Shown piece by piece: positions 3,342 through 58,018 of a stretch of 64,000 bases of DNA (position 1 is the stretch's first letter; every line of letters starts with the position of its first letter). Position numbers and translations under genes: made by a program. The notes under the pieces are model-generated. The model saw only the letters and a program-made list of their open reading frames with translations, was not told the DNA's origin and made no database searches. This DNA comes from Octopus bimaculoides (lineage: Eukaryota). The stretch spans positions 24,510,720-24,574,719 of the forward strand of contig NC_068993.1 in the NCBI RefSeq assembly GCF_001194135.2, in the 5' to 3' direction.

Positions 3342-3359
3342 CAGATAGATAGATAGATA
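3284..3359. repeat. (GATA)n microsatellite
   Basis: Direct reading. Confidence 0.97.
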
Positions 3360-3419
3360 TGAATGTACGTGTGTATGCACGTCTGTTTATTTGTGTATAA
3401 ATACATACATCACTATCAA

Positions 3420-3700: not shown

Positions 3701-4485
3701 ATACATTAATATATATATATATATATATATANNNNNNNNNNNNNNNNNNNNNNNNNNNNNNNNNNNNNNNNNNNNNNNNNNNNNNNNNNNNNNNNNNNNN
3801 NNNNNNNNNNNNNNNNNNNNNNNNNNNNNNNNNNNNNNNNNNNNNNNNNNNNNNNNNNNNNNNNNNNNNNNNNNNNNNNNNNNNNNNNNNNNNNNNNNNN
3901 NNNNNNNNNNNNNNNNNNNNNNNNNNNNNNNNNNNNNNNNNNNNNNNNNNNNNNNNNNNNNNNNNNNNNNNNNNNNNNNNNNNNNNNNNNNNNNNNNNNN
4001 NNNNNNNNNNNNNNNNNNNNNNNNNNNNNNNNNNNNTATATAAATACATATATATATGTATATGAGGATATTATTGTTTATAATAATATCCGTGGTTTAG
4101 CATGCGTAAAAAACCTATAAAGGAAAAAATGCTAAGCCACTGATATTATTATAAACAATAATATCGTCATATATATTTATATAATTTTTATTCACTTCCA
4201 TAACCTTTTAAAATTTGCTGCGGCATTAAAAACAGTCATCGCACTCATTGGTTGAGAGGAAAAAACTCTTCTGCCCTGGGGTCAGTAAGACTCGCTGTAG
4301 ATGAACTAAGAGTTTTTCTTAAAGTTCTAAATCACTGTGATACGGATATGTCTGACTTTTTCAATTTTCGATCATTTTCGTCATAGGTACCGAGACTTGG
4401 AGTTTTTGTTAATTTGCCCGATTTCACCTCTGTGTTTAAGTGAAAACTTATCCTTTGGTCATTTTGACTGCTATGTTAGCGTGCC

Positions 4486-6442: not shown

Positions 6443-6579
6443 TTCATTATTAATATACATCTGTATGTATTCATATATATTTGTATGTATGTATGTGTAT
6501 GTATATGTATATATATATGTATATATATGTATNNNNNNNNNNNNNNNNNNNNNNNNNNNNNNNNNNNNNNNNNNNNNNN

Positions 6580-6623
<44 letters not shown>

Positions 6624-6700
6624 ATATATACATATGTATACATATATATTTGTATGTATGTATATACATACACATATGAATACACACACACATATATATT

Positions 6701-6746
<46 letters not shown>

Positions 6747-7049
6747 ATTGCTAGAGGACAGAGTCTGTTTAGAATGGAGAGAAAGAGTGAGTTGGCAGTT
6801 TATAGATGGGTATTGTCATAATTTAGAAAATGTATAACTGACTGTCTATAACGAAGGCTGGGTAGTAGAAGACCGTAAATCAAGATGTTAATTACCACTG
6901 AAAGGGGCAAGACGCTAATAAAACCTATCTCTGTTCTATTTCATTGAAGACCTGACTCTCCTCAATAAAATCTGAACCTGACAGGTGGTCAGCTGCTATA
7001 TAGTGAGTTTTGTTAACTACATTGATTAATACTACCCCTCTTATGGTGA

Positions 7050-7890
7050 CTTTTTCTCTGTTTCTGTTGTTGTAGTAGTTTGTGTCATCTTAAACATTGG
7101 CATTTTCAATTATTTGTTTGTCTTGCCTCACTTTTCTGGGATTTGTTACTTGTTTTCAAACTTTTTTTTTCAAATCCCATGAACGATATTCTGTTTCTAT
7201 GCTTGCATTTTATAACCATCTCAGAGTGATTATTTATCACGCTTTCCCTGGATGTTATTTTTCTCAGGATTTCTTCACTGCATATGTTGAATACTCGTCA
7301 AGTCTCGTTATAAGGTGAAGCATTCTTTATAATTGACGAGTGGATTGTGTATTCCACTCCGTTCTGTTTTAGCCTCCAGACGAAGTTCGATACACATATA
7401 GAGTGTCGTTTGTTTATATTGATTTCTCAGACGATTTTTGATGGTGTCTGCGGAACTACCAATGTATACATATTTCTGCGTATTTGCCTTGACCTCAAAT
7501 TTGTACACTACATTCTGTATCATGAATTTGTTGCCAAATCGAAATTCGTCTTTACGTCTGAAGTTAATCGTGATACTATTGTTTTCTTTCTATCCGTAAT
7601 CGTGCACTCATTTTCCTCATGTATGCATTGTACTTCTAACTGTGAATGTTGTTTGAGTTTGATTTTGCTATTGATGAGATTTTACTACCACTATTTTCCA
7701 CCGTTCTATCATTGAACACAGTTCTGTTAGGTTTGTTTGGTTTAAATACCTCCTCTGGTAATATTCTATTAAGTTCTATGTTATTTAGTTTGTGTATGGG
7801 GTACCCTAGACTATGAGAAGTTTCCTATGCTAGTTTTATATTAGTCTGTTTATGATTTTGTGATATTTGGAAGATATATATATATACATA
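7050..7890 (-). mobile_element. Penelope-like retroelement fragment (GIY-YIG endonuclease end)
   Basis: QNVVYKFEV...KYVYIGSSADTIKNRLRN (7308-7523) is a GIY-YIG motif, followed by C-terminal KCKHRNR. Confidence 0.75.
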
Positions 7891-7950
7891 TAAAAACACA
7901 AACCGTTCATGGCGAAAAACATTTTTCGCCATGAACGGTTTGTGTTTTTA
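7891..7950. repeat. Perfect 29-bp-arm palindrome (2-nt loop)
   Basis: taaaaacacaaaccgttcatggcgaaaaa-ca-tttttcgccatgaacggtttgtgttttta; the arms are exact reverse complements. Confidence 0.97.
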
Positions 7951-9432
7951 AACCGAATGTATTTTTTCTGATATTATATTTATTCCTGAATGATGTGTAA
8001 AGAAATTTTGATTTAAGCATCTTAATGAATTCTTTATACTGAAATATATTGAAGAAGATAAATATGTTCATTTGAATTTATACGTTTTTGCGTCGTAACT
8101 CCGTTATTATTATTATATANNNNNNNNNNNNNNNNNNNNNNNNNNNNNNNNNNNNNNNNNNNNNNNNNNNNNNNNNNNNNNNNNNNNNNNNNNNNNNNNN
8201 NNNNNNNNNNNNNNNNNNNNNNNNNNNNNNNNNNNNNNNNNNNNNNNNNNNNNNNNNNNNNNNNNNNNNNNNNNNNNNNNNNNNNNNNNNNNNNNNNNNN
8301 NNNNNNNNNNNNNNNNNNNNNNNNNNNNNNNNNNNNNNNNNNNNNNNNNNNNNNNNNNNNNNNNNNNNNNNNNNNNNNNNNNNNNNNNNNNNNNNNNNNN
8401 NNNNNNNNNNNNNNNNNNNNNNNNNNNNNNNNNNNNNNNNNNNNNNNNNNNNNNNNNNNNNNNNNNNNNNNNNNNNNNNNNNNNNNNNNNNNNNNNNNNN
8501 NNNNNNNNNNNNNNNNNNNNNNNNNNNNNNNNNNNNNNNNNNNNNNNNNNNNNNNNNNNNNNNNNNNNNNNNNNNNNNNNNNNNNNNNNNNNNNNNNNNN
8601 NNNNNNNNNNNNNNNNNNNNNNNNNNNNNNNNNNNNNNNNNNNNNNNNNNNNNNNNNNNNNNNATATATATAAAACACCCTAGTCACATTTAGTGACAGT
8701 TATAATTCGAGAAATATTCCAACCTGCTGTTTATTTCAATTGAAGATATATATATATATATATATATTAGCCAATAAACCTTATTTTATTTTCTCTCTCT
8801 GCTTATTTCTGTGTTCCTTTCTGTTGAAGAGCGTGAAGCTAATACATATGTTTGTTGTTTACACACCCGTCTTCGTCTTTTGTTTTGCTTTTTTATAAAT
8901 TCCAACTACATACATACATACATACATACATACATACAAGACAAAATGAGTACAAATTGCAGTCTAATTAAAAACAAGAGAACTGTCTTTAACATTTCGA
9001 ATTTGAAAAGAGAAGGGACGAGCGATAAAGGGGGTGATATATATTAATCTGTTTTAGGTGCGAATGACAACGGCTAGGTCGAAAATAACCGCATATGACA
9101 GAGAAGACAGAGGGTTTCAGCGACACAAGTGCAACAGTATATAATTCATGTATACATCTTTTTTTTTTTTTTTTATACCTGTGTCGATGTGCTCTTAAGT
9201 CGTAGTTGCGTGTATGTGTGTTCGTTTATGTGTGGTATTTGTGAGTCAGTACACAAATTATGTGTGGAAATTTTGTGTGTGAATTGAAGTATGCGAGTAT
9301 ATGCATGACAGTGCCCATCTGCTATAAGGGCGGATGGGTATTTTCTTTCAATGGTAGGTTGCGCAATGACGATACTGTATGCATGGAATAGTACTATGGA
9401 TGTATGCGCGTGTGTATACATATGTGTGTGTG

Positions 9433-9464
<32 letters not shown>

Positions 9465-9869
9465 AGCGTGTTAGCTGTCTCAATGGGTGTTATGTAGTGA
9501 TGTTATGAGAACATTGTATGGTGCGTGTATGCTTACATTTCTTTGTTGACGAGAGCGTGCGTCTTTACGTATTTGTGTGCTGTTAGTGTGGTTAATGTTG
9601 TGTCCTAATACGTGATATTTCAATCTTGTATATTTGTGGAATTCCTGTGTAGAGTGTGTATATATCACTGTGTGATTCGTGAAAGTTGTGCGTTCGTGTG
9701 TGTATGTATTTGTTTGAATGATCAGAAGGTATTGATCAGGCTGATATTGTGATAGACGACACGTACACAATGTGTCGAGAAGTGTGATCAAAATTTAAAG
9801 CACGATATTTCGAAACGAATTTTTTTTATTGCAATCCAGATGTGTGTGCTCGCGTGGTGTGTGTATGTG

Positions 9870-9929
<60 letters not shown>

Positions 9930-9999
9930 TATGAGTTTGTGCCTGTGTAAGAGAGAGAATATCTGTGAGAATGTGTGTTTTCCTTGGTGAGTCTGGAGG

Positions 10000-12850
10000 A
10001 AGGGACAGAGCCCATGACCACTGCCGTCCCTCCTAGACTGGTGACATTCATATCATTAATGTTCTATTTAACTAGTCAACAATTGCAGGAAACTATCATT
10101 TGGGAGAAAATTCCGTGGGGATGATATCCTGTGGATGAGGTATTATGCATAGTGGTTAGTGTGAGAGAGTGATAGGTTGAACGCAATAAGGGTGATGATA
10201 GGTGAAGGGAAGAGTAGATAAGTGATGGATTTATGAGACTAGCCAGATCTGACGAGCAGTGCCAAAATATTAGTGATAGAAACATAGAGACAGAAGATAA
10301 ACACAACCGTACTCCAAAGACAAATGATGTACTGTCAGCGATGAGCGTTTTTGTAAATGATGGTGGGCCACTCAGCCGAGGCACTTTCTCTGGTTGTGGT
10401 CCAAGATAATTGTGTGCGTAGTAAACAACTGCGAACCTTCTGGAGCCTTGTAGAGTATCAGCAACAACAGTGGGATGCAATATCTCCCGCCTTGATGAAA
10501 AGAACTAATCTTAGGCATTAGCTGTAAGAAGGATGTGCTCTCGCCTGGCAAAAGTTTTGGTGATAATGAAGCCAAGCATTACGACTGACTGTGTGAGGTC
10601 TTGTTGAGTGCCGCTCATGTTTAGAAGAAATATGGCACGGTAGTGTCTTCTTGATATCAATAGCACTTGAGATGTTTTTTTCACAAGGCTGTCATCCCGT
10701 CTTCGAGGATATTGAAGAGATTTCCGTTTATAGAATCAAGGAACGTTTGGGTTGTGTTGTCTGGATTGCATGTGGATAATGTATGGTAAGGAAAAATTAA
10801 GGAAGGGATAATGTCATTTGCATAACAGTAGGCATTTTGTGATGAACCGTCAAGTAGATCACTGATGTACAGAAAGAAGATATCATATTATAGAACAGAA
10901 CCCTAAGGAATACCGGACTTCACTAAAGATGTGGTAGAAAGAATTCCATTAACACAAGCTGAAATTGTACAAAGCTGACGATAAGGAAATGAGATTGGTA
11001 AAACACGTTGATGACAAGTTTTGATCGGGGATGTGCATGCCTGAAACGATCGAAAGTTTTGCTGAGACCTTGAGCAACATCATTATTTTAGCAGAATTTC
11101 TCTAAAGTGAGATTGTATTAGTGAGTGACATAGAAAAATAGATCTCAAGTGGATCTGACTCTGCGGAAGTTCTTCTGGTAGTCATTGAAGAAAGAGATTC
11201 AAGATGACGGAAGATGTTATTGTTAAGAGTAGCCCTTACTCTGGAGAAATTAAAAGTGGGAACGATAGTGCAATAACTGGTTGCATCGAAGAGGTTGTCA
11301 TTGTTTTAGGATGGGACAAACTAAGATGTCCGTCTAAATGTTAGTGTATTTCCTTGTGGAGAATGAAAGATTAGAGGTTTTGGTGAGTATATGGACAGGT
11401 TTGGGGGTACAATATTTGAGAATACTTGAAGGGATCCTGTCAAGGACAGTAACATTTGTGTGAAGTGGCTGGAAATATGTCCGGACTTGGCCATTGTGTA
11501 GCAGACTGAGAGTTTGTTGGAGTGGAAGGTGTGTCGAATTGCAGGAGCTGGGCAAAGGTGTATATATAATGCGGAATTGAAGATAACTGTAGCAGTAATG
11601 GTGGAGACTACGACACAATGTTTGTGGCGTCCTCATTGGTTAGAAAAAGAGACTCTGCAAACTTGGTAAAGTAAGTGAAGAGAAACGATCGGCTGCAGTT
11701 TGGGAGACTTAAGAGCTTGAGCGACGAAATTATCCTTTGCACATTTATTATTGACCTTGCAGGTGTTACGCAGCCGGGGCAACGTCAACCAATTTTCGGA
11801 TGTGAACGAGAACTTCCAGATATTTTGGTCCTTGGTTGTTGCCCGAACAGATGCTGCACAACTACGAGTCAACCACTCGAAACAGTAGAATGAATGCTTT
11901 TGTTGCGTGACGGACTGACAGCTATAAGGATATTCACGGGCAGAGTTTTCGCAGTTTCTGAAAAATCAAGACTGAAGCACGTGTACTGCCAGGTATAAGT
12001 GACATAAAGCTAGTGAAATTCCAACCAGTTAGCCGAACTTGGGTATGCGGGCATTTGAAAATACCCCCACTGAGTGATGACTGCACCCTGCATAGTTACG
12101 AGCATAACACATGTTTAGTGACGTTGCCAGGGATACGGCGAAGTCAAAGGACTGCAGCTTGGTATATTGTTAAAAGGTAGCAGAAGGTCTCAACAGAGTC
12201 AACAGTGATTCTGACATTGATGCTGAGTGGAGAAATCCTAGAAGATCAACAGTCAGAATCACCATGCTCTATCAAGCGAGTAACTGCAGCGATAGCGAGA
12301 AAGAGTCATGGAAATCCGCGGAAGCAGCCGACCTGATGTGGCATAAGTTCCGGAATAAGGTTGTGTTGCATAGTATGTGATTTTATGTTGAGCAGTTGTG
12401 ATGAGGCGTGACAATATGTCCCGATCGATGCAGTGACAATTTTGGTATAGTAGAGGTCAAGTTTTTAGATGGAATCAAGGATGTTCGGGATGTCTATACA
12501 ACGGTCTGGAATGCCAGGAGGACATGCAGCAACTCTTAATAATCACTTCCACACCAGACGTTTCACCGTGTGATGACTGAGAGAGCTATGAGGAATTGCG
12601 ACCCCTTATACTGGAAAGATTTCTCAGCAGTCTCCAGAGTTCGAGGCGCGATAGGGAAGTGGATGTTTCTAGAAATGAGTGAGCAAGAGTAACTAGAAGT
12701 TGGTGATGCCGAAATTCAGACAACTGAAGTGATAGAAAGTGGGAGTGGGAGGAAAGATTCAAGTGCACATAAATAACTGAACAAAAGAAAAATAGAGAAC
12801 TACGTTTACACCAGATATTTCGCTAAGAAACCGCAGAGCTGCTCCGTTGC
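10000..12850 (-). mobile_element. CR1/L2-type non-LTR retrotransposon, heavily decayed ORF2
   Basis: Minus-strand RT motifs SKTFDR (DISKAFDR-like, about 11000-11080), GIP*GSVL (about 10900), FLYISDL and YANDI (YADD-like), plus C-terminal FWHCSSDLASLI and WNFLP. Many stops; the 5' boundary is approximate. Confidence 0.8.
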
Positions 12851-12991
12851 TACAACACATCTCTATTGAGATGGATGGTGAGAGCATCGTTTTCGTTTAT
12901 TTTTTGCTTACAGATTCTTTTACGAGTTTTTTTCTTTGCACTTGCTTTACTTTTATAATCACCAACATAGCCAAATTTTCTCTTACTTTCG

Positions 12992-13023
<32 letters not shown>

Positions 13024-14247
13024 NNNNNNNNNNNNNNNNNNNNNNNNNNNNNNNNNNNNNNNNNNNNNNNNNNNNNNNNNNNNNNATATATATTATATAT
13101 TATATATATATTACATATATATATATATTATATATATATTACATATATATATATATATATTATATATATATTACATATATATATAGACACACACACACAC
13201 ACACACACACACGCACGCATAGCTTCCGCTAGATGGTTTCAATTCATGGAGTACGTAGTGGATAGTTTCATTATGTTCAGTCATGCAACATAATCATTTC
13301 CATTGAATCCGTAACACTCTGGGTTCAATATCTTGAATATTACTCATTGATTTAGGCCACGTGGTGTTAGGTGAATCGATTCCCGTTTAACAAAACAATA
13401 ACGAATCAATGACTGAACAAAACTGAGTCTTATAACATTATTGTTATCTAACCGCCCGTACTGCGTGTCATGTAAGGGAAGATGTGAATGCATTACAACT
13501 TTGAACTTCTCGCTATAGGTCTTCCGTAAATTTACTCGATGTCTGAAGAACAAAGGTACATACATATACATACATACTCACATTCACACACTCATATATA
13601 TTCTTCCACTTCACTAATAAATGCCTGACACTAGACCTCAGCATCCAAGGATAAAGAAGTCGAAATAATGTAATTATGTATTCTGTTCTCAACTTAGGAA
13701 AGAATTCAATGCTTCCAGTACCTGCTGGGTCTCTTCACAGGTCCCATCTACAACAGTTGTATATTTACGGTTGTGGTGAAAATGAAAACTATTAAATGAA
13801 AGTGAAGATTGCAGTTCGCTGGTTATTTGCAAGGGAGTAAACTGTGGCAGCGGTGGCTGCGGTGATGACTACGACATTACATGATGATAATGCAGAAGAT
13901 GGAGGTGGCGGTGATGAGGCCTACGGCGATTCTGCATCATACCAGTAGTATGTTCTAGATAAATCTTAATGACTATATTATTAGTTGATGTCGATCAGCA
14001 ACAACAGAATCAGAACTACCATCATGTATATTCTAACCGTTTATCATATATATTTTCTTTCAGGTATGGTATGTGTAAGAGAGCAACACTCAAAATTGTA
14101 TTAATGCTTTTTCTTTTAAACGGGAGTATGTAATTTTTTAGATTTCGCTCCTAATTTTAGGTGTAATAGCCACATAGAAACTGGCTCATTGGTTTCAGTT
14201 ATTCTATATTTTAGAGGATGTGGTAGCTTTATGTAAGTATTAGCAGC

Positions 14248-14405
14248 TTACATTATTTACATTATTTACAATTGACGGATATTTGTCCTCATCTTGTGTT
14301 TGTTGTTAACACAACGTTTCTGCTGATATACCCTCCAGCCTTCATCAGGTGTCTTGGGGAAATTTCGAACCTGGGTTCTCATTTTTAAGGTATTTTTCGA
14401 TGTTG

Positions 14406-14437
<32 letters not shown>

Positions 14438-14448
14438 GTTATTATTAC

Positions 14449-14486
<38 letters not shown>

Positions 14487-14583
14487 TCACTGCCTGGAAT
14501 CGAACTCGGAATCTTGGGTTTAGTAGCCCGCACTCTTAACCACTACGCCATATGCCCGTGGGCATATGGCGTAGTGGTTAAGA
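14248..14583 (-). mobile_element. Composite non-autonomous element: tRNA-like head, (AAT/AAC)n spacer, Penelope-type tail with hammerhead, (TGTAAATAA)n end; inverted partial head copy at the 5' end
   Basis: Head 14557-14485 has box A TGGCGTAGTGG and box B GAGTTCGATTCC. Spacer 14401-14482, hammerhead 14353-14308, tandem end 14270-14248, palindrome 14534-14583. Confidence 0.75.
14308..14353 (-). ncRNA. Minimal type I hammerhead ribozyme-like motif (Penelope type)
   Basis: RNA GACAC-CUGAUGA-AGGCUG-GAGGGUAUAU-CAGCA-GAAA-CGU-U-GUGUU. Both core boxes are intact; stem I is GACAC/GUGUU, stem II GCUG/CAGC, and stem III the palindrome ACGU. Activity is untested. Confidence 0.65.
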
Positions 14584-14595
14584 TTGTTGTTGTTA

Positions 14596-14815
14596 AGGCA
14601 GCATGCTAGGAGAATTGTTAGCACACCGAGCAAAATGCTTAGCAGCATTTCGTCCGGCTGAGTTCAAATTCTGCCGAGGTTGTTTTGCCTTTCATCCTTT
14701 CGGGGTTGAGAAAATAAGTACAAGTCAAGCACTGGAGGTCGATATAATCGAGTAGCCTCCACCTCTACCCGCATTTTCAAGACTTGTGTCTACAGTCGAC
14801 GAGATTATTATGTTT
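14596..14815 (+). mobile_element. tRNA-related SINE (family C)
   Basis: Contains gttagcacaccgagcaaaatgcttagc, gagttcaaattc and gcctttcatcctttcggggttgagaaaataagtac; matches the copies at 24347 and 56390. Confidence 0.8.
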
Positions 14816-16199
14816 TATTATGTAGCTGAATTAGAATCAACCTTCCCTTTCAAAAGAGTATTTCAAGATATGTACATATTATTTAAAAGGAACGCACCTT
14901 TCTGCATCTGCAAGCTTTATTATTTGGTGAAAATCATATTCTGTTAGTGAGAAATTTTAAAAATAGAAAATACACTTGAATCTTTCCAACGAATTATTGT
15001 TGGATATTTCTGATGCACTCTGAATGATTTCGCGTTTTATGATCCCCTCAAAGCAACACTAAATATGTTTTGACACACGCTTTTTATTTCTCACTTGTCA
15101 GAGAGGATTGGGCCACTTTACTTCCCAAACATCTTAATAAAAGAGCCTAATATGTGTAAATGTTTTCATAATGTCTTTCACTTTATGAAGGCTGCAATTG
15201 GCTGCTCACAATAAAGGATTCGTTTGCCAACAACAAAAGCCATGGCTATTTGCCTCATGGGTGGAAACCATAATACTTAAGCAACAAAAGACGATCTCTT
15301 CACCTAGAAAGAAGTTTATGGGAAGTAAACTTTGTGGCAGTCGATTAATAAATGAAAATTAGCGTTATGATTCATCACCTGCCTAGCGGCATCTAAGTTG
15401 CGTTAGATGATGCAACAAATGCCTTTATTTCAAGAGGCTTTATTTCAATCGTCAGTCGTTAATGAGAGCTATATTCTACGCATTCTAGTAATCTACAAAA
15501 TGGGAGTAGCTTTACAATAAAAGGATGACACAGACTTCTAAAATGTTGTTGTTGACACCAATGATGTGCCATTATAGTGTCCTCTGATGCATTGTGTGCA
15601 TGTGCTACTATGTAATATCCTGCTGACGTAAGTCTAGCCTTAAATATGTGTCTGAGTAAATGTATTAATGCATGACTACGCTTGTGACTATGTGAAGGTG
15701 CTCTGTTCTGTTATAAAATGTTATTAATGAGACATTACTTTAAATGGTAACGGTATTGATGAAACCAATGTAGAATTAAACGTTTTGTTTAGAGTCTAGT
15801 TTATATATAAAATTATAACTGGCTACAGATATTAACAGATAAACCATCGTAATTCTCATTTATCTAAGCAAGATCATTTGCATAGTTATGAGCGCTTGTG
15901 ATTGTCGCGTCTCTTATTTTGTGTGTGTGTGTGAGTTCGCGCGTGAGTGCGTGCGTGCCTGTGGTAAGGAGTGTGTCTGTGTGTTCGTGTATATGTAATA
16001 TGTATGCTTGTTGCGACTTCATAGGTTGATTGTGTAAGGGTTGCAGGATTGTATGTGAATGTGTGTATGCATGAAGAAATGTATCTTTGTTAAGTTGTGT
16101 CATGTGAAAGTATGTGGGGCATAATTTAATGTGTATGTATGTTTACTGCTCGTATTTTGTTGTTGCGTGAATAGCATAAAACCGTTGAATACACATGCG

Positions 16200-16880
16200 C
16201 GTGTACATTTGTTACGAGTGGCGAGTGTAGTAGAAAAATATTGGGGTATGAGAATGGTGAGACTGGTAACTTGAGAGTGAAAGAGTTATAAGTTCGGAGA
16301 GAGAATATAAATTGCAGCGCTCGGCAAAGCCTGGAGTTTGCAGATCCGGTGTGTAAAACCAAGCTAAGCACAGATAGAGGATATTTTGAGTAGTCCATAG
16401 AGCAGAGCTAGTAAGAGTCACTACTCCGCCTGCCAAGCCTAATATCCGTGGAGATTTTCCATGAATTGGTCAGCCAAACGGCAGCGGGTTTTTTACATTT
16501 ATAGTGCATTGTAAACTGAAATACGGAAATTGCAGTGTGCTAATCGCAAGTAAGAAAGATGGTGCTGGTGAGGAATGGACAGGTGTGGAAACGTTGTCAT
16601 AAACAGGAGATAGATCAGAATTACTACGAAGAACTAAAAAGCTAGTAGGCCACGGAGGTTCTGGGCACGCTTGGAGAAATAAAGAGGCGGGTTAATTCAG
16701 AGGTGGTGTTCAGCAGTGTCAGAAAGGAAGGAGGTGGGAATGAGTAAGATCATAGGGTGGAAAGAATGAATAACATCATAAAGTTGAGGCATGGTGAGCA
16801 AAAATCACTTGGAATATGGTTGGTAAGAAGGCAAAAAGTGAACCTTGCGGGTAAGTTTAGCCCCTTGGACTTATTTAGGG
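16200..16880 (-). mobile_element. Penelope-like element fragment (zinc knuckle and GIY-YIG C-half), decayed
   Basis: Minus strand gives RFHTCPF (CxxCP-like), RLADQFMENL (RLADRFxEHL-like) and LSVLSLVL..GSANSR. Confidence 0.6.
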
Positions 16881-17553
16881 TTAACAATGCTAAATGAATA
16901 CATATACTATACCTGTGAGTTGTGTTCGCAGCTGCACCGGTGGCAGAGCCGGAGAATTGTGTGTGTGTGTATGTGTGTTGCAGGATTGATAGCCGGGCAT
17001 TAATAGCTGCAGCACTGACACCTATCCCATTATGTCATTTGATTTTAATTGATACACACACACACACATGTACTCTATGCAACGTAATAAGTTCCATTTA
17101 CATATCAAGAAAAGTATGTTCAAAAAAATATATTTATCGATAGCTTGCAAGCCACAAATGCCAGTAACTGATAAATGATATTACTTATGAAGAATAGCTA
17201 AATAGCTATGTTAAGATAGAATTAAGGAAATACAAACAATCTTCGACGAAAGAACATATTTAAAAGGAGTTATTGATAAAATACATTAACACGTATATAA
17301 ACATGTGTGTACATACGTTTGTATGTACGTGTATATATATGTGCAAGTGTATATTTTTTCGGTATTGACGTCATAGGAATTTTATAAGCTTTCGAGAGAA
17401 GGTGAATTCATTCCTCTTTGGAATATCTCGAATTACACATATGAAGCTATAAATATATCATGCAAATATTGGATTGAAAAATCTTTTGGGGTAGACGCTG
17501 TCGACTTTTGCAATATTTTTCAATATGTTTCAATGTTTTTAAAACAGGATTTT

Positions 17554-17890
17554 CTTAGGCTGCTAGAGCGTGTTCATCAAAAATGCTTGAAATGCATACT
17601 CAACATCAAGTGGCAAAGTCAAACATCTGACACAGAAGTTTTTGAAAAGGCAGGACGCACAAGCATCCATTTACTCATCATATCTATCCAAATGCTTTGA
17701 TAGGATCATGCTGTGTGCATGGAAGATAATAGGGTTCTGAAATAGTTGTTCAGCAGTGAGCTGTGCACTAGAAAGCGTTCTGAGCACAAAATGCATAAAA
17801 GACAATCTGAAGTAACTGCAGATCAATGTAAAGAAGCTAGTTCCAAAGAACTAGCTTTTGGAAAGAGCAGAATGGTAGAAGCGTATTAGG
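17554..17890 (+). mobile_element. RTE-clade LINE 3' fragment
   Basis: LRLLERVHQKCLKCILNIKWQSQTSDTEVFEKAG, then a GH.V.MEDNRVLK.LFSSEL..KDNLK-like stretch typical of the RTE/BovB ORF C-terminus. Confidence 0.75.
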
Positions 17891-17899
17891 CAAGGTTGT

Positions 17900-18590
17900 A
17901 GAATTATGAAGAGGGGCGTCTTCGGCCCGAAAACATTTAGCGCTGGTGTCAGAGAACATAAAGCGTTGGAGGTGTGAAAAGTGTGCCTGGTTATGTCAAC
18001 CATCCGAAGTCTCATGAAATCCATGAAAGATCAACTCTATGCAATGCGTTTCTCCAATGTAGCGTGTGAAATGCTTGCAAGTCGATTTCAAGTCTGAAGA
18101 TATAACAGTTCACAGTGATCATATCTAACAACCTGGTCCGATCCATATAGATCTGCAGTGGAACTGCATAATCATCTGAGAGTTCATTGACGGAATATCT
18201 GAAATGTCATTGACAACGTGGAAGCTCGGAGAGACGACAATCGTCTGTGAAGGGGGAACAATCATGATGTGTATCTACTCTTCAAACGGCGCAACCGAGA
18301 TGTATCTCCCAATGCTGCACCAGGAACTTTTATTATCCTCAAATTTCATATCGAATGTCTGTATCAATAACGTTCGATGTATTTGAGTACTCGTCGTCCT
18401 ACAATAGACTGCGGAAGCTTCCAAAGCATATTGAGATTTCCACTTCTGATATTTCTATCACGAAGCAGTAGCCAGCAAAGTCTACTCAGTGTTGCAGAGT
18501 AAGATAAGAAATAATGGAATCTTCCCGTAAATCTCCTTTGTGTATTTGTGCAGACGGACAGAGATGTTGTGTGTTCTAATGGGAATTCAA
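17900..18590 (-). mobile_element. Probable very old Penelope-like fragment
   Basis: YIGET on the minus strand near 18050 and a PLQIYMDRTRLLDMI stretch resembling the PLE linker; the similarity is weak. Confidence 0.35.
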
Positions 18591-18723
18591 GTTTATATAT
18601 ATATATATATTCAAAACAATCGTGAAGCAACATTTTCTTATTCTAAATTTTTTGTCCCGTTTTTGTATTCCTTTTTAAATACATATTGCGTCGTACGTAC
18701 ACTTTGATCTCTTATATGTAAGT

Positions 18724-18834
<111 letters not shown>

Positions 18835-19568
18835 AATTTTGTACTACTCTTATTCTTTCATTTTTTCTTTCTTTCTGTCAGCCCCTTCACACTTACTTCG
18901 TTCTTTCCACTCTTCTTTCTTTCGTTCCCCCTCTCTCACATTTCATGGCTTTCTCTTCATTTTCACCTTCCCTTTTCTTTTTTCTCGTCCATTCCTAACT
19001 CTTCTGTCCCTCTGCCTCTACCTCTCTCCTCTCTCTCCGCGTGACTGGTATTCGGCCAAGCCTGACCTTTCTTTCTTGGGTCGACTACAATCCGTGCAAC
19101 ACCTATATTCCTCACCATGCCTGTCATCCCTTATGTCCCTGCCGTAAGGCTGCACTTCCACACATGCCAGCTTAATTTGATTCGTCGTTAGTCGAAAGAT
19201 ACCAGTTGTTATATCTTGTTATTTGCATTTGCATTTGTGTACCATTTCTCCATTTTTTCCGTCCTTCTTTTCGTTTACATTCACTGCTTTTTTCCAAGTG
19301 CTCTTTCTTCTAGTGCTCTTAGCTTACATTTTCCTTGGGGGCTGACCAGATTGGAGCAATTTCGAGTATAACCAGCCGAAATTGCAAAGATAATCTGGAA
19401 CTCTATTGAGGAAAGGAAACTTCGAATGACCCGTCCGTGTTTTTTTCTTTTTCTGGCCCTTTTTGTATCACCAGTCTGGATGTTTTGCCCCATTTTTTGT
19501 ATTCCTTTTTATATACATATTGCGGCGTACGTACACTTTGCGCTCTCTCTCTCTCTCTNNNNNNNNNN

Positions 19569-19607
<39 letters not shown>

Positions 19608-19975
19608 TTGTGATACACAATGTGGATATGTAAGAAACGGAGTGTGAAATATCTAATGTGATTTGTAGGTACGTAGTATTTCGTTATGCAACCATCATAT
19701 ACTATAAATTACATTAGATATTTTTTTTATAAGTCAATATCACGTTCTGCTGTGTAACAATGCACTTTCTATAAAGTTTTTCATCTTCGATCTCATTGTT
19801 TGTTTACATCTGACGTCTCGTAGCAAAAATCAGTGCTAGCTATATTTTCTATAGGATATCTACAGACATAACCTTAATAAATAACATCATAAACAAGTCA
19901 TAAAAATATATTTATGCATTTAAGCGTTTAAGTGTAACAGAAAAGAATCTGAAAAAACAAAACAGTGGTACTTAC

Positions 19976-20799
19976 TTTCCCTCGCTCTTTTGTCTTTCAC
20001 CAGTGTCACCCAGTTTTAAAATGGCACTTGATAATGCCTCTGTATAGGCTGTGTCTTTCCGTACAGCAAATCCATAACCTTTCAAATCGAATGGATTCCC
20101 GATTTCCATAAGATCGCATTTGTCAGCAATTTCCCATCGAAGTGTCGGAGAATCCCAGATAAAGGCATATTTGGTGTTTCTTGCTCTAGCTAATCCTTCC
20201 TCTACCCTTTGTACAATGCTTTCGGGATTATATCTCATATGGAGCCACATCTTACTATAATGACTAATATTGGTGTGCTTGAAAAAGTCTTCAATTTGGC
20301 TCTCATTTACCGTTCCATAGTCATATGTTGTTTGATATGCTAGGTCTGCTGCATTTTCTATTGGTAAGTAAATGTTAGTAACAGTGAGAAAAGCAGCAAG
20401 ATTGGCTGTGTACACAGATATGATAATCAGTGAAAAAAGCCACCATGAACTACTTATGATTCTACTAGATACTGCTAACGGGGAACTCTTAAGACTTCCA
20501 CGTAGTAATGTTCCCCATATGTACCAAAAGCTCTCGAGGAAGTTGTGCGTATATTTGCGGTGTTTGTCAGAGTTGACTCGACTCACGCCAAACAATGCAA
20601 GGCTGACCACGAGAAAGGATAAAAATATTCCAATCCACACATAGTTTGATAACGGAAATAAAAACTGAAACATCCACACTGTTCTCTGTGGCTTCTTTAC
20701 GACCACTGTGGTACCTTTCGTCATGAATGACTTGGTAAAGTCCACCACTTGGGATCGCTCAGGGGTAACGCTAAATGGTGCCAAAGCAACATCAGCTTT
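19976..20799 (-). CDS. iGluR exon G (824 nt): end of S1, M1, M2 pore loop, M3, S2
   Basis: tttcag acceptor, KADVALAPFSVTPERSQVVDFT...VYTANLAAFLT...YGTV...AFIWDS...KGYGFA...ILKLGDTG, then aa|gtaagt donor. Phase 0 in, phase 2 out. Confidence 0.96.
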
Positions 20800-20802
20800 C
20801 TG

Positions 20803-20810
20803 AAATAATA

Positions 20811-20860
<50 letters not shown>

Positions 20861-20911
20861 CAGCAACAGCAGTAACAACAGAAATAATAATAATAATAAT
20901 AATAAGAATAA

Positions 20912-21001
<90 letters not shown>

Positions 21002-22748: not shown

Positions 22749-22970
22749 ATTATCAATTAATTCTCGAATCATTCCTGTCCAACCTCTTTTTTTCTTGCTG
22801 CCAAATTTTCCATCGGGTGCGAGATAAATTTCAAATTGAAATTTCAAAATCTTTGACATGGCTTTCAGTATATCGATGCAAAACCCCTCCAACTGCAGGC
22901 TATTTCTGGACTTAACTGGATCATCGTTTAGATAGTCGGTGGAATTTCTAACTTGAACAAACGGTGGTTC
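22749..22970 (-). CDS. iGluR exon F (222 nt): S1 lobe
   Basis: ttctattcag|EPPFVQ...LEGFCIDILKAMSKILKFQFEIYLAPDGKFGSKKKRGWTGMIRELIDN|gtaagc. Phase 0-0, joins exon G in frame (DN|KAD). Confidence 0.96.
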
Positions 22971-23121: not shown

Positions 23122-24171
23122 TCCTTCATTCATATTTTTATTTACACACACACACACACACNNNNNNNNNNNNNNNNNNNNNNNNNNNNNNNNNNNNNNN
23201 NNNNNNNNNNNNNNNNNNNNNNNNNNNNNNNNNNNNNNNNNNNNNNNNNNNNNNNNNNNNNNNNNNNNNNNNNNNNNNNNNNNNNNNNNNNNNNNNNNNN
23301 NNNNNNNNNNNNNNNNNNNNNNNNNNNNNNNNNNNNNNNNNNNNNNNNNNNNNNNNNNNNNNNNNNNNNNNNNNNNNNNNNNNNNNNNNNNNNNNNNNNN
23401 NNNNNNNNNNNNNNNNNNNNNNNNNNNNNNNNNNNNNNNNNNNNNNNNNNNNNNNNNNNNNNNNNNNNNNNNNNNNNNNNNNNNNNNNNNNNNNNNNNNN
23501 NNNNNNNNNNNNNNNNNNNNNNNNNNNNNNNNNNNNNNNNNNNNNNNNNNNNNNNNNNNNNNNNNNNNNNNNNNNNNNNNNNNNNNNNNNNNNNNNNNNN
23601 NNNNNNNNNNNNNNNNNNNNNNNNNNNNNNNNNNNNNNNNNNNNNNNNNNNNNNNNNNNNNNNNNNNNNNNNNNNNNNNNNNNNNNNNNNNNNNNNNNNN
23701 NNNNNNNNNNNNNNNNNNNNNNNNNNNNNNNNNNNNNNNNNNNNNNNNNNNNNNNTATATATATATATATATATTATCATTATTATTATCATTATTATTA
23801 TCATTATTATTATTATCATTAACTAGCGATCCAGAGAAGGAGTTAAGGATTGAGAGCGTTAATTAGAATATAGAGAAATACTACATAATCCAAGCTTATT
23901 TCATCAGTGATATCGAATTGCTTCCATAAAGTTTCGAAACTGCATTCTGTTTCACTTACGTCTTGCATTAGACTACTTGTTATAATTAAATTTTTCTATC
24001 AATAATTACCTTTTCAGATAAGACTCATTAGTTTGTTCAAAATTAATTAGATATGCTTGCTCTTTAGGGAATTCCGATATAGAACGTAAATTTATTTATG
24101 TACGCACTTCATATATATCTTTCCACTTCGCTACAACATATGCCGATTATATTAATAACTTCTGTGAAATG

Positions 24172-26713: not shown

Positions 26714-26842
26714 TATGATGGTTACTACTCTAAGAGGTTTCGTTCCAAAGATGTCTCCGCGGTACCGTGGAACACTGCTAACACTTCGATTGATCATAAT
26801 TCTCAAATCTCTGGTCTTCGGACCGCTACGCCAGGTACTGCG
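26714..26842 (-). CDS. iGluR exon E (129 nt): ATD-S1 linker and start of S1; not in the ORF track
   Basis: tcttgtcttag|RSTWRSGPKTRDLRIMINRSVSSVPRYRGDIFGTKPLRVVTII|gtaagt. Phase 0-0; LRVVTII|EPPFV is the canonical S1 start. Confidence 0.92.
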
Positions 26843-27098: not shown

Positions 27099-27623
27099 NN
27101 NNNNNNNNNNNNNNNNNNNNNNNNNNNNNNNNNNNNNNNNNNNNNNNNNNNNNNNNNNNNNNNNNNNNNNNNNNNNNNNNNNNNNNNNNNNNNNNNNNNN
27201 NNNNNNNNNNNNNNNNNNNNNNNNNNNNNNNNNNNNNNNNNNNNNNNNNNNNNNNNNNNNNNNNNNNNNNNNNNNNNNNNNNNNNNNNNNNNNNNNNNNN
27301 NNNNNNNNNNNNNNNNNNNNNNNNNNNNNNNNNNNNNNNNNNNNNNNNNNNNNNNNNNNNNNNNNNNNNNNNNNNNNNNNNNNNNNNNNNNNNNNNNNNN
27401 NNNNNNNNNNNNNNNNNNNNNNNNNNNNNNNNNNNNNNNNNNNNNNNNNNNNNNNNNNNNNNNNNNNNNNNNNNNNNNNNNNNNNNNNNNNNNNNNNNNN
27501 NNNNNNNNNNNNNNNNNNNNNNNNNNNNNNNNNNNNNNNNNNNNNNNNNNNNNNNNNNNNNNNNNNNNNNNNNNNNNNNNNNNNNNNNNNNNNNNNNNNN
27601 NNNNNNNNNNNNNNNNNNNNNNN

Positions 27624-43298: not shown

Positions 43299-44204
43299 CT
43301 GTTGACACATTCTTCTGGTTTGTAAAGTAATTCATGTTTAAGGAAAATATAGGATATCTGTGCACTGGGAGTCCTCTGCTACAATTTGGAAATCTAGATT
43401 ACATAACCATTCTCCTTCATTTAAGTTAAGTAGGAAATGTAATTCTACGAACCTTAGTAAACGCATTTGGTGTTTGACAGACAAGAGCATTAACTACGAT
43501 GTAAATGGCCCATTATAAGTATCATCTTTCTAATTTTTTTAGTATACATAAATAGCTATTTTTTTTAGTATACATAGGTTTAATTTTGTATTCTTTCGCT
43601 ATCTACTGACGTTATCACATACTTAACTGATTTTTCTTAGAATATTATATTTGTTTTTAACCCTTTTGTACGTGTTCATGCATTATAGATATTATTTCAA
43701 TTTGTTTTGAATTTCACTCGTTTTGGTTTATATAATATTGTGATAGCATAAATTTTCAGATGTATTGGTTTGAATCGTATTTTGTATATTTTGTCTACAT
43801 TTAAATATAATAGCACAAACGAAACATTCGTCGATAATGTATGATGTAATCATTAATCAAAGATGCGATTTTTCCCACCCTTGTTCATGTTGATATATAA
43901 ATAAGTGAAAATATGTGTGTATTAAACATATAGCCATTTGGATTTATTTACAAACTTATATATGCGTCTAGGGATTTAAGTATCTAAATGTGTACATGTA
44001 TCTTTCAGACTGCACTCATGTATGCATGATGTATCTTTTAAATTATATGTATACATAAATCTATTTATCTATACATAACAACACCTGAGCCGAGCATTGA
44101 GAGTGAAGTGGAGAGAAGATGAGGAATAAGAAGAAAGCGGTAATGATTCGAGCGGGATACAATCTGCATAGCAATAGGATACCATTCTTTTAAAACGACA
44201 TTAC

Positions 44205-44309
44205 CGAGCCATTGTGCATACCACCAAGAATGATAAGTTGGAGAAACTCTTCTTTGCGAACTTGGTTTTGTTGAAAAGATAGATGACCCGTACAACCGTC
44301 TTTGTGAAT
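44205..44309 (-). CDS. iGluR exon D (105 nt): end of the ATD
   Basis: ttttctattttcag|IHKDGCTGHLSFQQNQVRKEEFLQLIILGGMHNGS|gtaatg. Matches the ATD-terminal GLTGxIxFxxxGxR..LxII pattern; phase 0-0. The frame differs from the ORF-track call 44065-44295. Confidence 0.88.
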
Positions 44310-46599
44310 CTGAAAATAGAAAATAAAGTGAAATTTAATAATATCTAACTCTTGCGCTACAATGCTAATTGGTAAGTTTCTCTTTTTTTTTTCCTTAATA
44401 ACTTATTCTTAAAACTAAAATCGTTATAATTAGGGAAGACTTAAGATTGGAGTCAGTCCTCCAAAGCTTGTGATTTTAATCTTCGGAATTCTGGCATATG
44501 TTTTAAATATTTTTTCATATTTTAAGAATTTCTTTTGATGTGGTTATCTTACATATTTATTACGATATTGCTGGCTACTATTTGACACAGCATTTGCAAC
44601 AGTAGAAACAAATAGTTTCAATAATAAAAATAGTTTGGAAGTACCTGATATGATTACTATTATTTTGCTTATTGTTTGCAGTTAACGCTGTTGTTTTATT
44701 AAACTTTTAGCTTTATTCTCTTCAAATAGCTTTCCTATATGTGTTACCTCCTATAATTTAAAACAACCACATTAGAATAACTAAACAAAACAACGTTGCT
44801 GGCAGCAGCAGACTATATGGCAGCAAAGGAAGTCAAGTGTGATAATCTACACTACCTACAGCAATATGAGCCACGCCAGGATAAAATATAATATATTCCA
44901 TGTCAATCACATAAATGCATAAATATCCAATTATAGCTATTCGATTATTTCACACAACTTTTGCTCCGCAGTAGCCATTGAAATATATCTTCAAATATTT
45001 TTAGCAGTTTAATATTTTTATTCCCTGGAATGCAAAACACAACAAATTGTCACATATATTTCAAATATTCCAAAAAATGGGCTATACCATTTCCTCTTCA
45101 TGTAACATATTTAGAACCTTCCTAGGGTGTGACTATTCGTCTCCATCCATATACAATACAACAAATCAACGACATATTATTCATTGATTATTGATGCTTC
45201 ATTGTTCACCATACATCTAGCTGTGTTCAGATTTTAACGCAGAGAAAATCACCGTTTCAAGAAATACAGTAAATAATATGCTTTCCTGATGAAATTACAA
45301 TATGACCGAAACTTGTTTGGAAATACCGTTTTCTTGTTCTTAAGATGAGTGAAAAGTCTCTCTGTATATATGTGTGTGCATGTGTGTATGTATGTGTACG
45401 TGTGTGTATATGCACGTTTTCATAAATATATGTATATTCATAAGTTTCCTTCGTATGTGAATGGGGTGATTATAAATATAGAGTTATTCTTATGCAAACA
45501 CTCAATCAATGACATATATGCATATAGAATCAGACTGCTTCGCAGCTAGATAAAGAAAGAGAAAGTGAGAATGGGGGAGAAGGTAAAAGAGAACGAGAGA
45601 TTCAGTAAAAGTACAGAGCGTATTGTTTAGAAAACATCTATTTTTGTAAATAGTTCTTAGACATATTGTGTTTTACATACATCTACGCCTGTTTTTTGCA
45701 TATATATGTTCCATTCTGTGCGTTCTCATTACCATGTATATGATTATAGATGAGTGTGTTTGCTTCTAGCAGTTTATATTACTACTATGTAGTAATATAT
45801 TACTCGAATACTAAAGGAACCATTGTATTAGCATGATTCACATATGCAGCAATCACTAGTGACAGGCGATGTTCAAAAATGCTTGTCTTAAATTTTATAA
45901 CGCTTATTGTTCCTTCGGGGATTTCATAGATGTGTACTCACAAAACCTTACCACAAACTTATTATTTGCAAGGCGAGGTAATTTGTTATTTATATGTTGG
46001 CTAATTCAGAATTTGGAAAATATATGTCAGCTAATTCGAAATAATCGCTGAAAAATTAATATTGATTTTACCATTACATAAAATTACGTCTAGTTTGCAA
46101 GATAGATCAAACAGTCATAGAACTGATAAAGAAATGTACGTTTGAAATACGGATGTTGTGTTCTGAACACATTATGGCTTAACAATTTCTGAGGTTTGTA
46201 ATGGATGAGAACAGAGCAAAGACGAGACCGATACATTTCAAAATAACACAGATATCATAACAAAGATCGATAAACTTAGTGATGCTTTTAAATTGGTTTT
46301 TCTGTACCTGTGTTGGTGTAAATTTCTGAAGAGAAATAACAGATATGAGATGTAATATGATGAAAGAAATCTGCGAGTGATTCATTAATAACTCAATCAG
46401 TTTTTTTATTACCTTTCCCAGATCAAGAATAGTTTGACAGAGAAAAATTTAAAGCTTCTCGTACATATAGAAACAAGGAAGTCTTAAAACAAAGAGGTTT
46501 TAAGTGGAGTGGAACAACCTGAATTTTTAACCGTAAAGTATGGTTAAAAAGAGGGCTTTGCAACAACGTTGTTTCAGGTTCGTCACTATTCAATCCCTT

Positions 46600-54078: not shown

Positions 54079-54321
54079 CGTTTGTATTGGTAACCCTAAT
54101 GTAGAGTTAGATTCGACTTTTGTTGAGTTCTCATTTGTTGAGTCCATTAATTCCATCGATAAAAGAAAAGCATCGTGAAGTATTGCATCAGCTAAGGACA
54201 GGTTTTTATCAGTTAACATAGTTTCTGTACATTGGGACGAATTTTGGTCTACCATGAGCTGAAGCAATGTTACATTAGGATGCGCCGGAATTAGATCATC
54301 CAAATCTACTTCCTCCAGTCC
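54079..54321 (-). CDS. iGluR exon C (243 nt): ATD
   Basis: tacttttctag|GLEEVDLDDLIPAHPNVTLLQLMVD...LADAILHDAF...LGLPIQT|gtgaga. Phase 0-0; NVT and AILHDA match the ATD motifs N(I/V)T and AL.YDA. Confidence 0.85.
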
Positions 54322-54749
54322 CTAGAAAAGTAAATGAAAACAATTACAAAAAGTGGTGCAAATGAAAAATTTAGCGTAATCAATAATTCTGAACTGAATA
54401 TTTAATAATCAGTTATTGGTGTTCATTTTCGACTGCTGTATGAATGTTCTGAAGTTGTGTACATAATATTGATGCACATTACTTCGAATTTTATGATACA
54501 ATAACTAATGCTTTTAGATTTCTCTATGGTTTATAAGTACGGGTTTCAATGTTTCGTTACAATTCACTAGAAATGTATACTAGATTGGGTCCCTAAATAG
54601 ATATAGAAATAAATTTCTTTCAAATCTCAACTGTATAAGAGGGAAGGATAAATTATATATTGTTCTTTCTACCGTTTGGATTGCTTAGCCATGGCTAAAA
54701 TGCTTTTAAACATAGGGCTGTCTACTTGATTAGGAGTGACCTGAGGCTA

Positions 54750-57143: not shown

Positions 57144-57197
57144 CATGTTGACTACTAACCAGTTATATGGATACGACATCATACTTAGCAATAGAGC
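57144..57197 (-). CDS. iGluR exon B (54 nt mini-exon): ATD; not in the ORF track
   Basis: ctcatttcag|ALLLSMMSYPYNWLVVNM|gtaagt. Phase 0-0; fits the conserved Q|AxxxGMxxxxYxW/Y position between exons A and C. Confidence 0.85.
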
Positions 57198-58018
57198 CTG
57201 AAATGAGTTGGAAAACAAAATAAACTCTCAGTAATACAGTAAAACGAGCAACTAGCAATAATATTTGCGTTAAAAATTCACATTCAAAAACGTGTCCATA
57301 TTTCATAACAAAGTAATGTGGAGACGGTATATTGCATGTTTTATGTAGTTTTACATTTAAAAGTACTACCTAAAAATTTATAAAATGTTTAAATAGCAAC
57401 TTCAGCATTTATACCTTTCCAGGTAATATTTTCCCTTGATGAAATTATATATTTAATGTGTACATTAACTAATTCATATAAAATATTATGTGATTTGTAA
57501 TTTTAGTTGGAAGTTTAAGACAAAAATTATTGTAATTTTGATTAGGAAAGATCTTTTGTCATTTTACCGAAACTGAATCTTCCCTGCGGGTTATAATAAA
57601 TAGATAGTGAAATGAAAAAAATGGCATAAGATACGTATTTAGAGAAAATATTACTGCGAAATGATAACCTCTAACAATAGCTTGTTAGATTTCCACTATA
57701 GATTTAGATGAACGTGGTAGTTTGGCGTTGTCTTTTCTCGACTACAGTGGAGATATGAATCCATCGAAAGAAATCAGTCGATAGTTACATAATATCTTTC
57801 ATTAATGATGGTATTTTCCTTTCGGTATTTATGTTCGAATAAATGAAATTGCCCTTTGAAAATCAAATATTGTTAAAGACCCACAGTAATGAAAAACACT
57901 TGGCTTCCCATCGACTCGGTGAATATGAGTGTCATGTGAAGAGAAATATAACAAATTTTTAACATAAATTTCGCAAAGAGTGTTGTGGTGAAATTAGGAA
58001 TAACAGTGTGTTCTTTAC

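Follow-up and report, generated by a model that had tools for sequence, protein, structure and literature searches.

The 64 000-nucleotide stretch of the Octopus bimaculoides genome analysed here (contig NC_068993.1, positions 24,510,720 to 24,574,719; hereafter the window) carries on its minus strand a gene for an ionotropic glutamate receptor (iGluR) subunit in which an arginine at the apex of the pore, the glutamine/arginine (Q/R) site, is written directly in the DNA. Control of Ca2+ permeability by an arginine at this site is a central theme in the study of glutamate receptors, and mammals rely on RNA editing for it. Judged by comparison with its relatives, the octopus gene is an orthologue in a molluscan 'GluR6-type' clade of orphan iGluRs; the member is new and poorly annotated, its kind known but uncharacterised. 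Our reading of the locus as a whole is that of a GluR6-type orphan receptor with a germline, clade-invariant arginine at the pore apex, expected to show Ca2+-impermeable, low-conductance behaviour and to respond to a glycine-type agonist, and we would give this reading a probability of about 0.6.

The pore exon comprises 824 nt (window 19976..20799, minus strand) and runs from the end of S1 through M1, M2 and M3 into S2, between an acceptor (tttcag/AAAGCT) and a phase 2 donor (GGAAA/GTAAGT). An exhaustive HMMER search retrieved a 547-residue database protein (P0121, UniRef100_A0A0L8I6N7) that is 100% identical across the whole exon through its residues 212-485. The exon product of 274 residues matched the Pfam family Lig_chan (PF00060) at 4.5e-29 and solved GluA2 chains at 1.7e-59, and the stop-free run holding the exon extends over 380 codons, the next longest N-free run in this window of 32% G+C having 166 codons and the median run 9. 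Because of these matches and of the length of the open run, we regard it as a real coding exon and not as a chance open reading frame (ORF).

The end of the M2 pore helix and the selectivity-filter loop lie at 20479..20526 on the minus strand, where the codons TGG GGA ACA TTA CTA CGT GGA AGT CTT AAG AGT TCC CCG are read and where translation gives WYIWGTLLRGSLKSSP, aligned without gaps to WFSLGAFMQQGCDISP of GluA2. The HMMER alignment to GluA2 contains no gaps between the M2 Trp and the SYTANLAAF motif, a span of 46 residues in each protein anchored by W, G, SP, R, WW and LII.S.YTANLAAF. In this alignment the octopus Arg pairs with the first Gln of MQQGCD, which is the edited position, Gly and Ser follow at +1 and +2, and Lys pairs with D590 at +4. 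The Arg codon at the Q/R site is CGT (20500..20502, residue 100 of the exon product), and the codons from +2 to +4 (20488..20496) encode Ser (AGT, 20496-20494), Leu and Lys (AAG, 20490-20488), resulting in the filter RGSLK. An AlphaFold2 model of the exon product, built from a 43-sequence alignment with a mean predicted local distance difference test score of 81.5, predicted helices for M1 at residues 52-79, for the M2 pore helix at 87-99, ending at L99, and for M3 at 110-140, with R100 located directly after the M2 helix at the apex of the re-entrant loop. Foldseek superposed this model on chains of GluA1/A2/A4 and GluK2 spanning the ligand-binding domain (LBD) and the transmembrane domain (TMD), over 268-283 columns for 274 residues and with a probability of 1.00. 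On the alignment and the model, the octopus arginine occupies the Q/R site. Since the codon is CGT in the DNA, Q-to-R editing is not required, and the defining feature of a Q/R-edited subunit, a genomic CAG recoded to Arg by ADAR, is absent both here (CGT) and in the relatives (CGA or AGA). A preliminary description of this locus had reported exactly this peptide, with R at the Q/R site, G at +1, S at +2, a Lys in place of the acidic +4 residue and a genomic CGT independent of editing; each of these observations was confirmed, and the structure-guided comparison did not shift the Arg from the pore apex.

The closest full-length relative is GluR6 of Aplysia californica (NP_001191542 / AAP41208 / Q7Z1H4; 875 residues), which shows 63% identity over the pore exon and whose M2 reads WGTLLRGSLTGSP. 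Named members of the clade come from the gastropods Aplysia, Nucella lapillus and Batillaria attramentaria and from the bivalves Solemya velum and Pinctada imbricata, and about 20 further members are ENA or Logan contigs. The octopus sequence is 58-66% identical to clade members versus at most 45% to all other relatives. The motif W-G-(T/A)-(L/I)-L-R appeared in 27 of 27 clade sequences, with the Arg invariant. Three genomic lineages use three different Arg codons (CGT, CGA and AGA), and selection therefore appears to act on the amino acid. The Arg is likewise present in two transcript assemblies among the Logan contigs, P0322 (839 residues on 3.1 kb) and P0282 (477 residues on 2.6 kb), which represent spliced transcripts because they are too short to hold the introns and read through the …EGK/WW junction into M4. 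P0282 shares a 90% cluster with P0006, whose genomic Arg codon is CGA.

Around the invariant arginine the loop varies within the clade. Position +1 is occupied by G, A, S or N, +2 by N, D, E, S or G, +3 by L except in the two most divergent members, which have T or M, and +4 by T, K, Q, S or N, with E once and Asp in none of the 27. Besides the octopus, two members have Lys at +4, and the R-G-S triplet is common to the octopus and three gastropods. The octopus sequence displays the clade signature, namely FWY.WG..LR with the Q/R-site Arg, a +4 residue other than Asp and I or V for the S of SYTANLAAF, its own gating motif in M3 being VYTANLAAF (20389..20415, minus strand). Conservation within the clade is among the highest in M2, M3 and the gating motif, and at 65 otherwise clade-invariant sites the octopus exon is changed in two, other members in 0-6; by this comparison the octopus pore exon looks to be under constraint. 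The exon structure is also shared, with a single exon from the end of S1 to S2 that terminates at …EGK/gtaagt, a donor read in DNA for the window and for two relatives' loci (L001 and L002) and inferred in the other relatives from ORF ends at (E/R)GK or EKR. Since the LLR[GASN]xx loop is common to all 27 gastropod, bivalve and octopus members, it predates the cephalopods and has no evident tie to coleoid recoding. Hence, as far as these sequences indicate, the Arg pore dates back at least to the common ancestor of three molluscan classes, the gastropods, bivalves and cephalopods.

How unusual such a pore is was assessed in the 234 retrieved relatives with a recognisable M3 motif. Their Q/R site is Q in 120 cases, R in 48, G in 27, L in 12, H in 8 and K in 4, with other residues in the remainder; +2 is G in 178, S in 21 and N in 13, and +4 is acidic (D/E) in 183 and K in 4. 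Arg at the Q/R site was also found in arthropod kainate-type (FLRQGSGLNP), spider (LMRQSSELTP) and amphioxus (MMRKGGEPPP) subunits. A genomic pore Arg is on record in the acoel AMPA receptor Hof-98014323, at the Q2 position (PMC13520880), and in some fish and early vertebrate GluA2 (Kung 2001, as cited in PMC13520880), and among Phi-class subunits none has Gln at 586, the Q/R site (PMC6307864). A hard-wired Arg alone is thus not surprising. What appears specific to the clade, from the residue comparison, is the combination of an invariant Arg, a lost +4 Asp and a non-Gly +2; the one feature peculiar to the octopus is its Lys at +4. Taken together, the preliminary description stood as regards the alignment, the position and genomic encoding of the Arg and the +4 Lys, with orthologues and relatives' transcripts in agreement on the Arg. 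Its further claims did not: the filter is no rewriting peculiar to this gene or lineage, given that all 27 clade members share the loop, Aplysia GluR6 included; the Arg pore is older than the cephalopods and so not notable against their recoding; the +2 Gly is not invariant; and Q/R-site Arg is no rarity. It also missed that the putative ligand-binding residues follow the glycine and not the glutamate pattern. Three Branchiostoma proteins of 'delta/kainate-like' type (P0220, P0233 and P0247) carry Arg-Lys at the Q/R and +1 positions (MMRKGGEPPP, LVRKGVEPAP); they form a further, independent group whose pore apex is positively charged by genomic encoding, possibly the Phi class.

The gene displays the hallmarks of iGluRs, with a Lig_chan pore, the topology of M1, re-entrant M2 and M3, and the gating motif. 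The bipartite S1/S2 LBD is recognised by PF10613 and PF00497 and keeps the equivalents of Arg485 and of the acidic residue 705, and the full-length members P0122, P0264 and P0322 possess an ANF_receptor (PF01094) amino-terminal domain (ATD). In a neighbour-joining tree of 178 LBD-TMD regions (~280 columns), which carries no bootstrap support, the clade with Aplysia GluR6 and the octopus appeared as a monophyletic group with a long stem, separate from both the AMPA (FMQQGCDISP) and the kainate (LMQQGSELMP) groups; loosely next to it stood lophotrochozoan groups from Pecten, Plakobranchus, nemerteans and annelids, whose pores read LVQ/G.GTE. Aplysia GluR6 had already been listed as an "orphan" by Greer et al., 2017 (PMC5225553). 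Besides their placement in the tree, AMPA (GluA) receptors were discarded on the filter, RGSLK and not of the MQQGCD type, and on residues S653/I655/D705 in place of G653/T655/E705, and kainate (GluK) receptors on a filter not of the MQQGSE type and on D705 in place of an E705-type residue. A chemosensory ionotropic receptor was rejected because an ATD and the ligand-binding Arg485 and Asp705 equivalents are present; an IR25a-like protein was only 30% identical, with the pore TPQGGGE. Membership in the Delta (GluD) class is not supported by the sequences: the ATD of Aplysia GluR6 scored best with GluK2, GluA4 and GluK1, with no GluD among its best 60 PDB matches, which is a weak test, and the tree contained no GluD references. 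Phi and mollusc-only Zeta classes have been described in molluscs by Zeng et al. (PMC8437780).

Alignment with GluA2 located the putative ligand-binding residues on the minus strand. The equivalent of R485, which binds the ligand alpha-carboxylate, is R15 in VTPER (20755..20757); Ser-Gln-Ile (20293..20301) takes the place of G653-S654-T655, involved in S2 ligand selectivity; and D216 in FIWDSP (20152..20154) corresponds to E705. The P478-F-S480 equivalents are also kept. Every clade member has Gln654 and Asp705, most have Ser at 653, and either Ile or Thr stands at 655. FIWDS is likewise the sequence surrounding Asp732 of GluN1. According to a published selectivity rule, Gly653 with Thr655 predicts glutamate and Ser653 with a non-polar 655 predicts glycine (PMC8437780). 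Because Ser653 and Ile655, together with the retained Arg485 and Asp705, fit this pattern, the octopus subunit is a glycine-type candidate, for which glycine or a comparable small amino acid is a likelier agonist than glutamate.

What the arginine might do can be considered in the light of receptors already studied. Ion selectivity and unitary conductance are both controlled by the Q/R-site Arg, as are block by polyamines and the assembly of tetramers; homomers of GluK2(R) have a finite permeability to Cl-, and those of GluA2(R) form poorly (PMC3753602). Block by polyamines requires the +4 Asp, and channels with four Arg are poor conductors (PMC12226733). In the acoel AMPA receptor, the genomic pore Arg leads to linear, Ca2+-insensitive currents, as back-mutation showed (PMC13520880). 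Clade members are full-size subunits, with ATD, LBD and M1-M2-M3-M4, and we propose that in them a ring of Arg side chains would repel divalent cations and polyamines as in GluA2(R) and GluK2(R). By the same analogy, homomers would be Ca2+-impermeable, non-rectifying and of very low conductance, with some Cl- permeability; alternatively, the subunit would need non-Arg partners and set the properties of the heteromer. Loss of the +4 acid, plus the Lys in the octopus, would be expected to remove polyamine block further. It is reasonable, reasoning from these precedents (PMC3753602, PMC12226733, PMC13520880), to expect low conductance, Ca2+ impermeability, polyamine insensitivity, possible Cl- permeation and dominance in heteromers, in a subunit that is possibly silent.

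A different view is that the subunit carries no current under physiological conditions and functions as a GluD-like ligand-binding synaptic organiser or signalling scaffold, the pore Arg (and the octopus Lys) reflecting or enforcing a closed or blocked pore. Each subunit places two positive charges at the narrowest part of a cation pore, and the Asp705 motif FIWDSP resembles that of the glycine- and D-serine-binding classes GluN1 and GluD. Four-Arg variants express or conduct poorly (PMC12226733), GluA2(R) homomers show the assembly defect mentioned above (PMC3753602), and the oyster CraGluD, a mollusc 'Delta' receptor possibly related to the clade, produced no current, not even when it carried the Lurcher mutation (PMC10861852). 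On the other hand, GluK2(R) homomers do conduct, the conservation of M2, M3 and the gating motif exceeds the apparent need of a pure scaffold, and the best ATD scores of Aplysia GluR6 are with GluK and GluA, with 0 GluD among the best 60. We hold a non-conducting subunit to be unlikely. Still less probable, and offered as speculation, is a stronger form of the conducting channel, in which the clade would consist of glycine- or small-amino-acid-gated, anion-shifted inhibitory or shunting iGluRs, or of obligate 'GluA2-like' subunits that evolved independently and render molluscan receptors impermeable to Ca2+ with no need of RNA editing. Were this true, the octopus with its extra +4 Lys would be the most extreme case.

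A whole molluscan clade that includes Aplysia, a classic learning model, and the octopus has carried a genomic Arg at this site from a time before the molluscan classes separated. It pairs this Arg with a filter lacking the polyamine-binding Asp and with a putative glycine-type pocket, and offers a natural experiment on a permanently "edited" pore, on the partners that such a pore needs and on whether iGluR pores may drift toward anion permeability.

Several points weigh against our reading of a Ca2+-impermeable, low-conductance receptor with a glycine-type agonist. Besides the missing bootstrap support of the tree, prediction of the ligand from two or three residues is known to be unreliable (PMC13648236). 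No electrophysiology for any clade member was found in the literature, and Aplysia GluR6, the best-known carrier of the Arg pore, has stood for years in databases without functional study. Cephalopod orthologues were not recovered by a word-indexed search, which returned only proteins of up to 467 residues and missed the locus's own model, nor by a search with the S2 half alone, whose four candidates included no match. Moreover, an M4 exon was not found in window positions 1-19975, the 20 kb downstream of the pore exon, either with the splice pattern AG-N-TGG-TGG and a looser version with a hydrophobicity filter, or by tblastn with the L001 M4 peptide, or with a profile hidden Markov model of clade M4 segments run against every open stretch in the six frames. 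In the octopus, the pre-M4 helix (GDTGERQKSEGK) is without the clade-conserved hydrophobic I/L-Y-L pattern, and the gene may be incomplete, the database model ending in a non-homologous exon.

These last observations could suggest a decaying or truncated octopus gene without M4, the pore sequence of which would be of no physiological consequence in this animal. The unfound M4, an annotated 3' exon without homology or transmembrane segment, the divergent pre-M4 helix and the absence of a retrieved cephalopod orthologue would all be in keeping with such a copy. However, the pore exon is open over 274 codons in AT-rich DNA with a median open run of 9, its canonical splice sites lie at clade-conserved positions, only two of the 65 clade-invariant residues are changed, and further upstream the exons for S1 and the ATD are likewise open and in collinear order. 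Among the relatives, M4 is present in L001 (L001:13068, in an exon 2.2 kb downstream of the pore exon), P0122, P0264 and P0322, and at the L002 locus no M4 exon was recognised within 10 kb. The window contains 11 N-runs (3732-4036, 8120-8663, 19559-19568, 23162-23755 and 27099-27623, among others), and the 10-N gap at 19559-19568, only ~400 nt downstream of the pore exon, could conceal sequence including M4. With 11 such gaps and upstream introns of up to 17 kb, the missing M4 gives no evidence of M4 loss, and the octopus M4 may be located in an assembly gap or past the window start. We consider a decayed copy distinctly improbable, and a pseudogene is unlikely in view of ORF length and conservation.

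Most of the assembly gaps are bordered by (TA)n, (CA)n or (GA)n microsatellites. At the L002 locus, positions 17504-20276, ~7 kb downstream of that relative's own pore exon, contain ORFs for a reverse transcriptase, an endonuclease and a PHD finger, which resemble a long interspersed nuclear element together with a Pygo-type PHD gene.

A further alternative is that ADAR re-tunes the octopus filter around an uneditable Arg, converting the +2 AGT from Ser to Gly and the +4 AAG from Lys to Glu, Arg or Gly, which would bring back a canonical Gly, an acidic +4 residue or both. CGT contains no editable adenosine, whereas AGT (to GGT) and AAG (to GAG) do, and the +2 Ser shared with gastropods is encoded here by an editable AGT. 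Extensive recoding of neural transcripts is documented in coleoids (PMC8382921). Nevertheless, the local RNA fold of 301 nt was not significant (z = -1.79, with 6 of 100 shuffles equally stable), only inverted repeats of 7-9 nt surround the site, and the same Ser occurs in gastropods, which lack extensive recoding; such re-tuning is very improbable. The inverted repeats that bracket the filter codons are 20480-20486 / 20510-20516 (7 nt, perfect, GGGGAAC/GTTCCCC) and 20494-20502 / 20535-20543 (9 nt, 89%); both are absent from L001 and L002 and probably arose by chance.

Upstream of the pore exon, further parts of the receptor were mapped on the minus strand, where three ATD exons are followed by a linker/S1 exon, the S1 exon and the pore exon. 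The S1 exon (22749..22970; EPPFVQV…GFCIDIL…GWTGMIRELIDN) is 56% identical to residues 407-475 of Aplysia GluR6, and the ATD-LBD linker with the start of S1 (26714..26842; …TWRSGP…GTKPLRVVTII/gtaagt) was placed by mapping of clade proteins. An ATD exon at 44202..44312 (QIHKDGCTGHLSF…FLQLIILGG) was detected by tblastn with the Aplysia, Batillaria and Solemya proteins (E 5e-5 to 2e-6), and another at 54148..54345 (GLEEVDLDD…NVTLLQLMVD…ILHDA) matched Aplysia GluR6 residues 240-301 (E 1.2e-8), the boundaries of both being approximate. A probable ATD exon at 57144..57200 (QALLLSMMSYPYNWLVVNM) gave a weak match (tblastn E 0.017-0.7 with three clade proteins) and is collinear with the other exons. The first ~230 ATD residues were not found within the window, and the octopus gene spans at least 37 kb, with its 5' end probably beyond the window. 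In the public model A0A0L8I6N7, neither the first coding exon (36432-36166, minus strand) nor the last (18200-18015, minus strand), which contains no transmembrane segment, has homology to any clade member. Because these end exons are non-homologous and the ATD-homologous exons map further upstream, the comparison with the clade indicates that this O. bimaculoides model is incomplete and partly mis-predicted, the real ATD exons and the M4 exon having been replaced.

Other features of the window were recorded in passing. A (TAT/ATT)n microsatellite at 20801-21000 (minus strand) abuts the 3' splice site of the pore exon; it forms an unusually long pyrimidine-rich tract and makes the ORF seem longer, at 366-380 codons. 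On the plus strand, opposite to the gene, 35780-35898 matches 5S rRNA over its full length (Rfam RF00001, 95.4 bits, model positions 1-120); the match falls in the intron of 17 kb that separates the ATD exon at 44.2 kb from the linker exon at 26.8 kb. No T-run terminator follows it directly (…gtaagcatctcacgtttaaa), and it may be an orphan or retroposed copy, not a member of a 5S array. An ORF at 142-513 (plus strand) resembles by eye a fragment of a mariner/Tc1-type transposase (…FEKFRSGNF…HELNEHQ…).

Compared with known systems, the octopus gene is nearest to the Aplysia GluR6 type. Both share the M2 sequence FWYIWGTLLRGSL.(G/S)SP, in which Arg occupies the Q/R site and Ser the +2 position, the I/VYTANLAAF motif, Ser653-Gln654, Asp705 (FIWDSP) and collinear ATD exons. 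They differ in the +4 residue (Lys in the octopus, Thr in Aplysia), in residue 655 (Ile in the octopus, Thr in Aplysia), in WWLF for WWFF and in the divergent octopus pre-M4 helix, and the octopus M4 and first ATD exons were not found in the window. The Phi (GluF) and 'Zeta' AKDF classes, compared by published description, are likewise non-AMPA and non-kainate and spread across molluscs; they have variable 653/655 residues with glycine-type candidates, and Phi lacks Gln at 586 (PMC6307864, PMC8437780).

Acoel, fish GluA2, arthropod and amphioxus subunits resemble the clade in having a genomically fixed positive charge at the Q/R site or beside it, and the arthropod kainate-type group also in lacking a +4 acid. 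In contrast, these subunits belong to separate clades and otherwise keep Q at +1 and G at +2 (Lys at +1 in amphioxus), and the acoel Arg sits one residue downstream of the octopus Q/R-site Arg. The Q/R-edited vertebrate GluA2, GluK1 and GluK2, finally, have an Arg at the same pore-apex position, in the same fold and in an ungapped M2-M3 alignment, and by analogy the same effects on Ca2+ permeability, conductance and polyamine block would be expected. In these vertebrate subunits, however, A-to-I editing creates the Arg from a CAG in the genome, QGCD or QGSE makes up the remainder of the filter and the ligand-binding residues are of the glutamate type, whereas the octopus has a genomic CGT, a filter continuing as GSLK without a +4 acid and residues of a putative glycine type.

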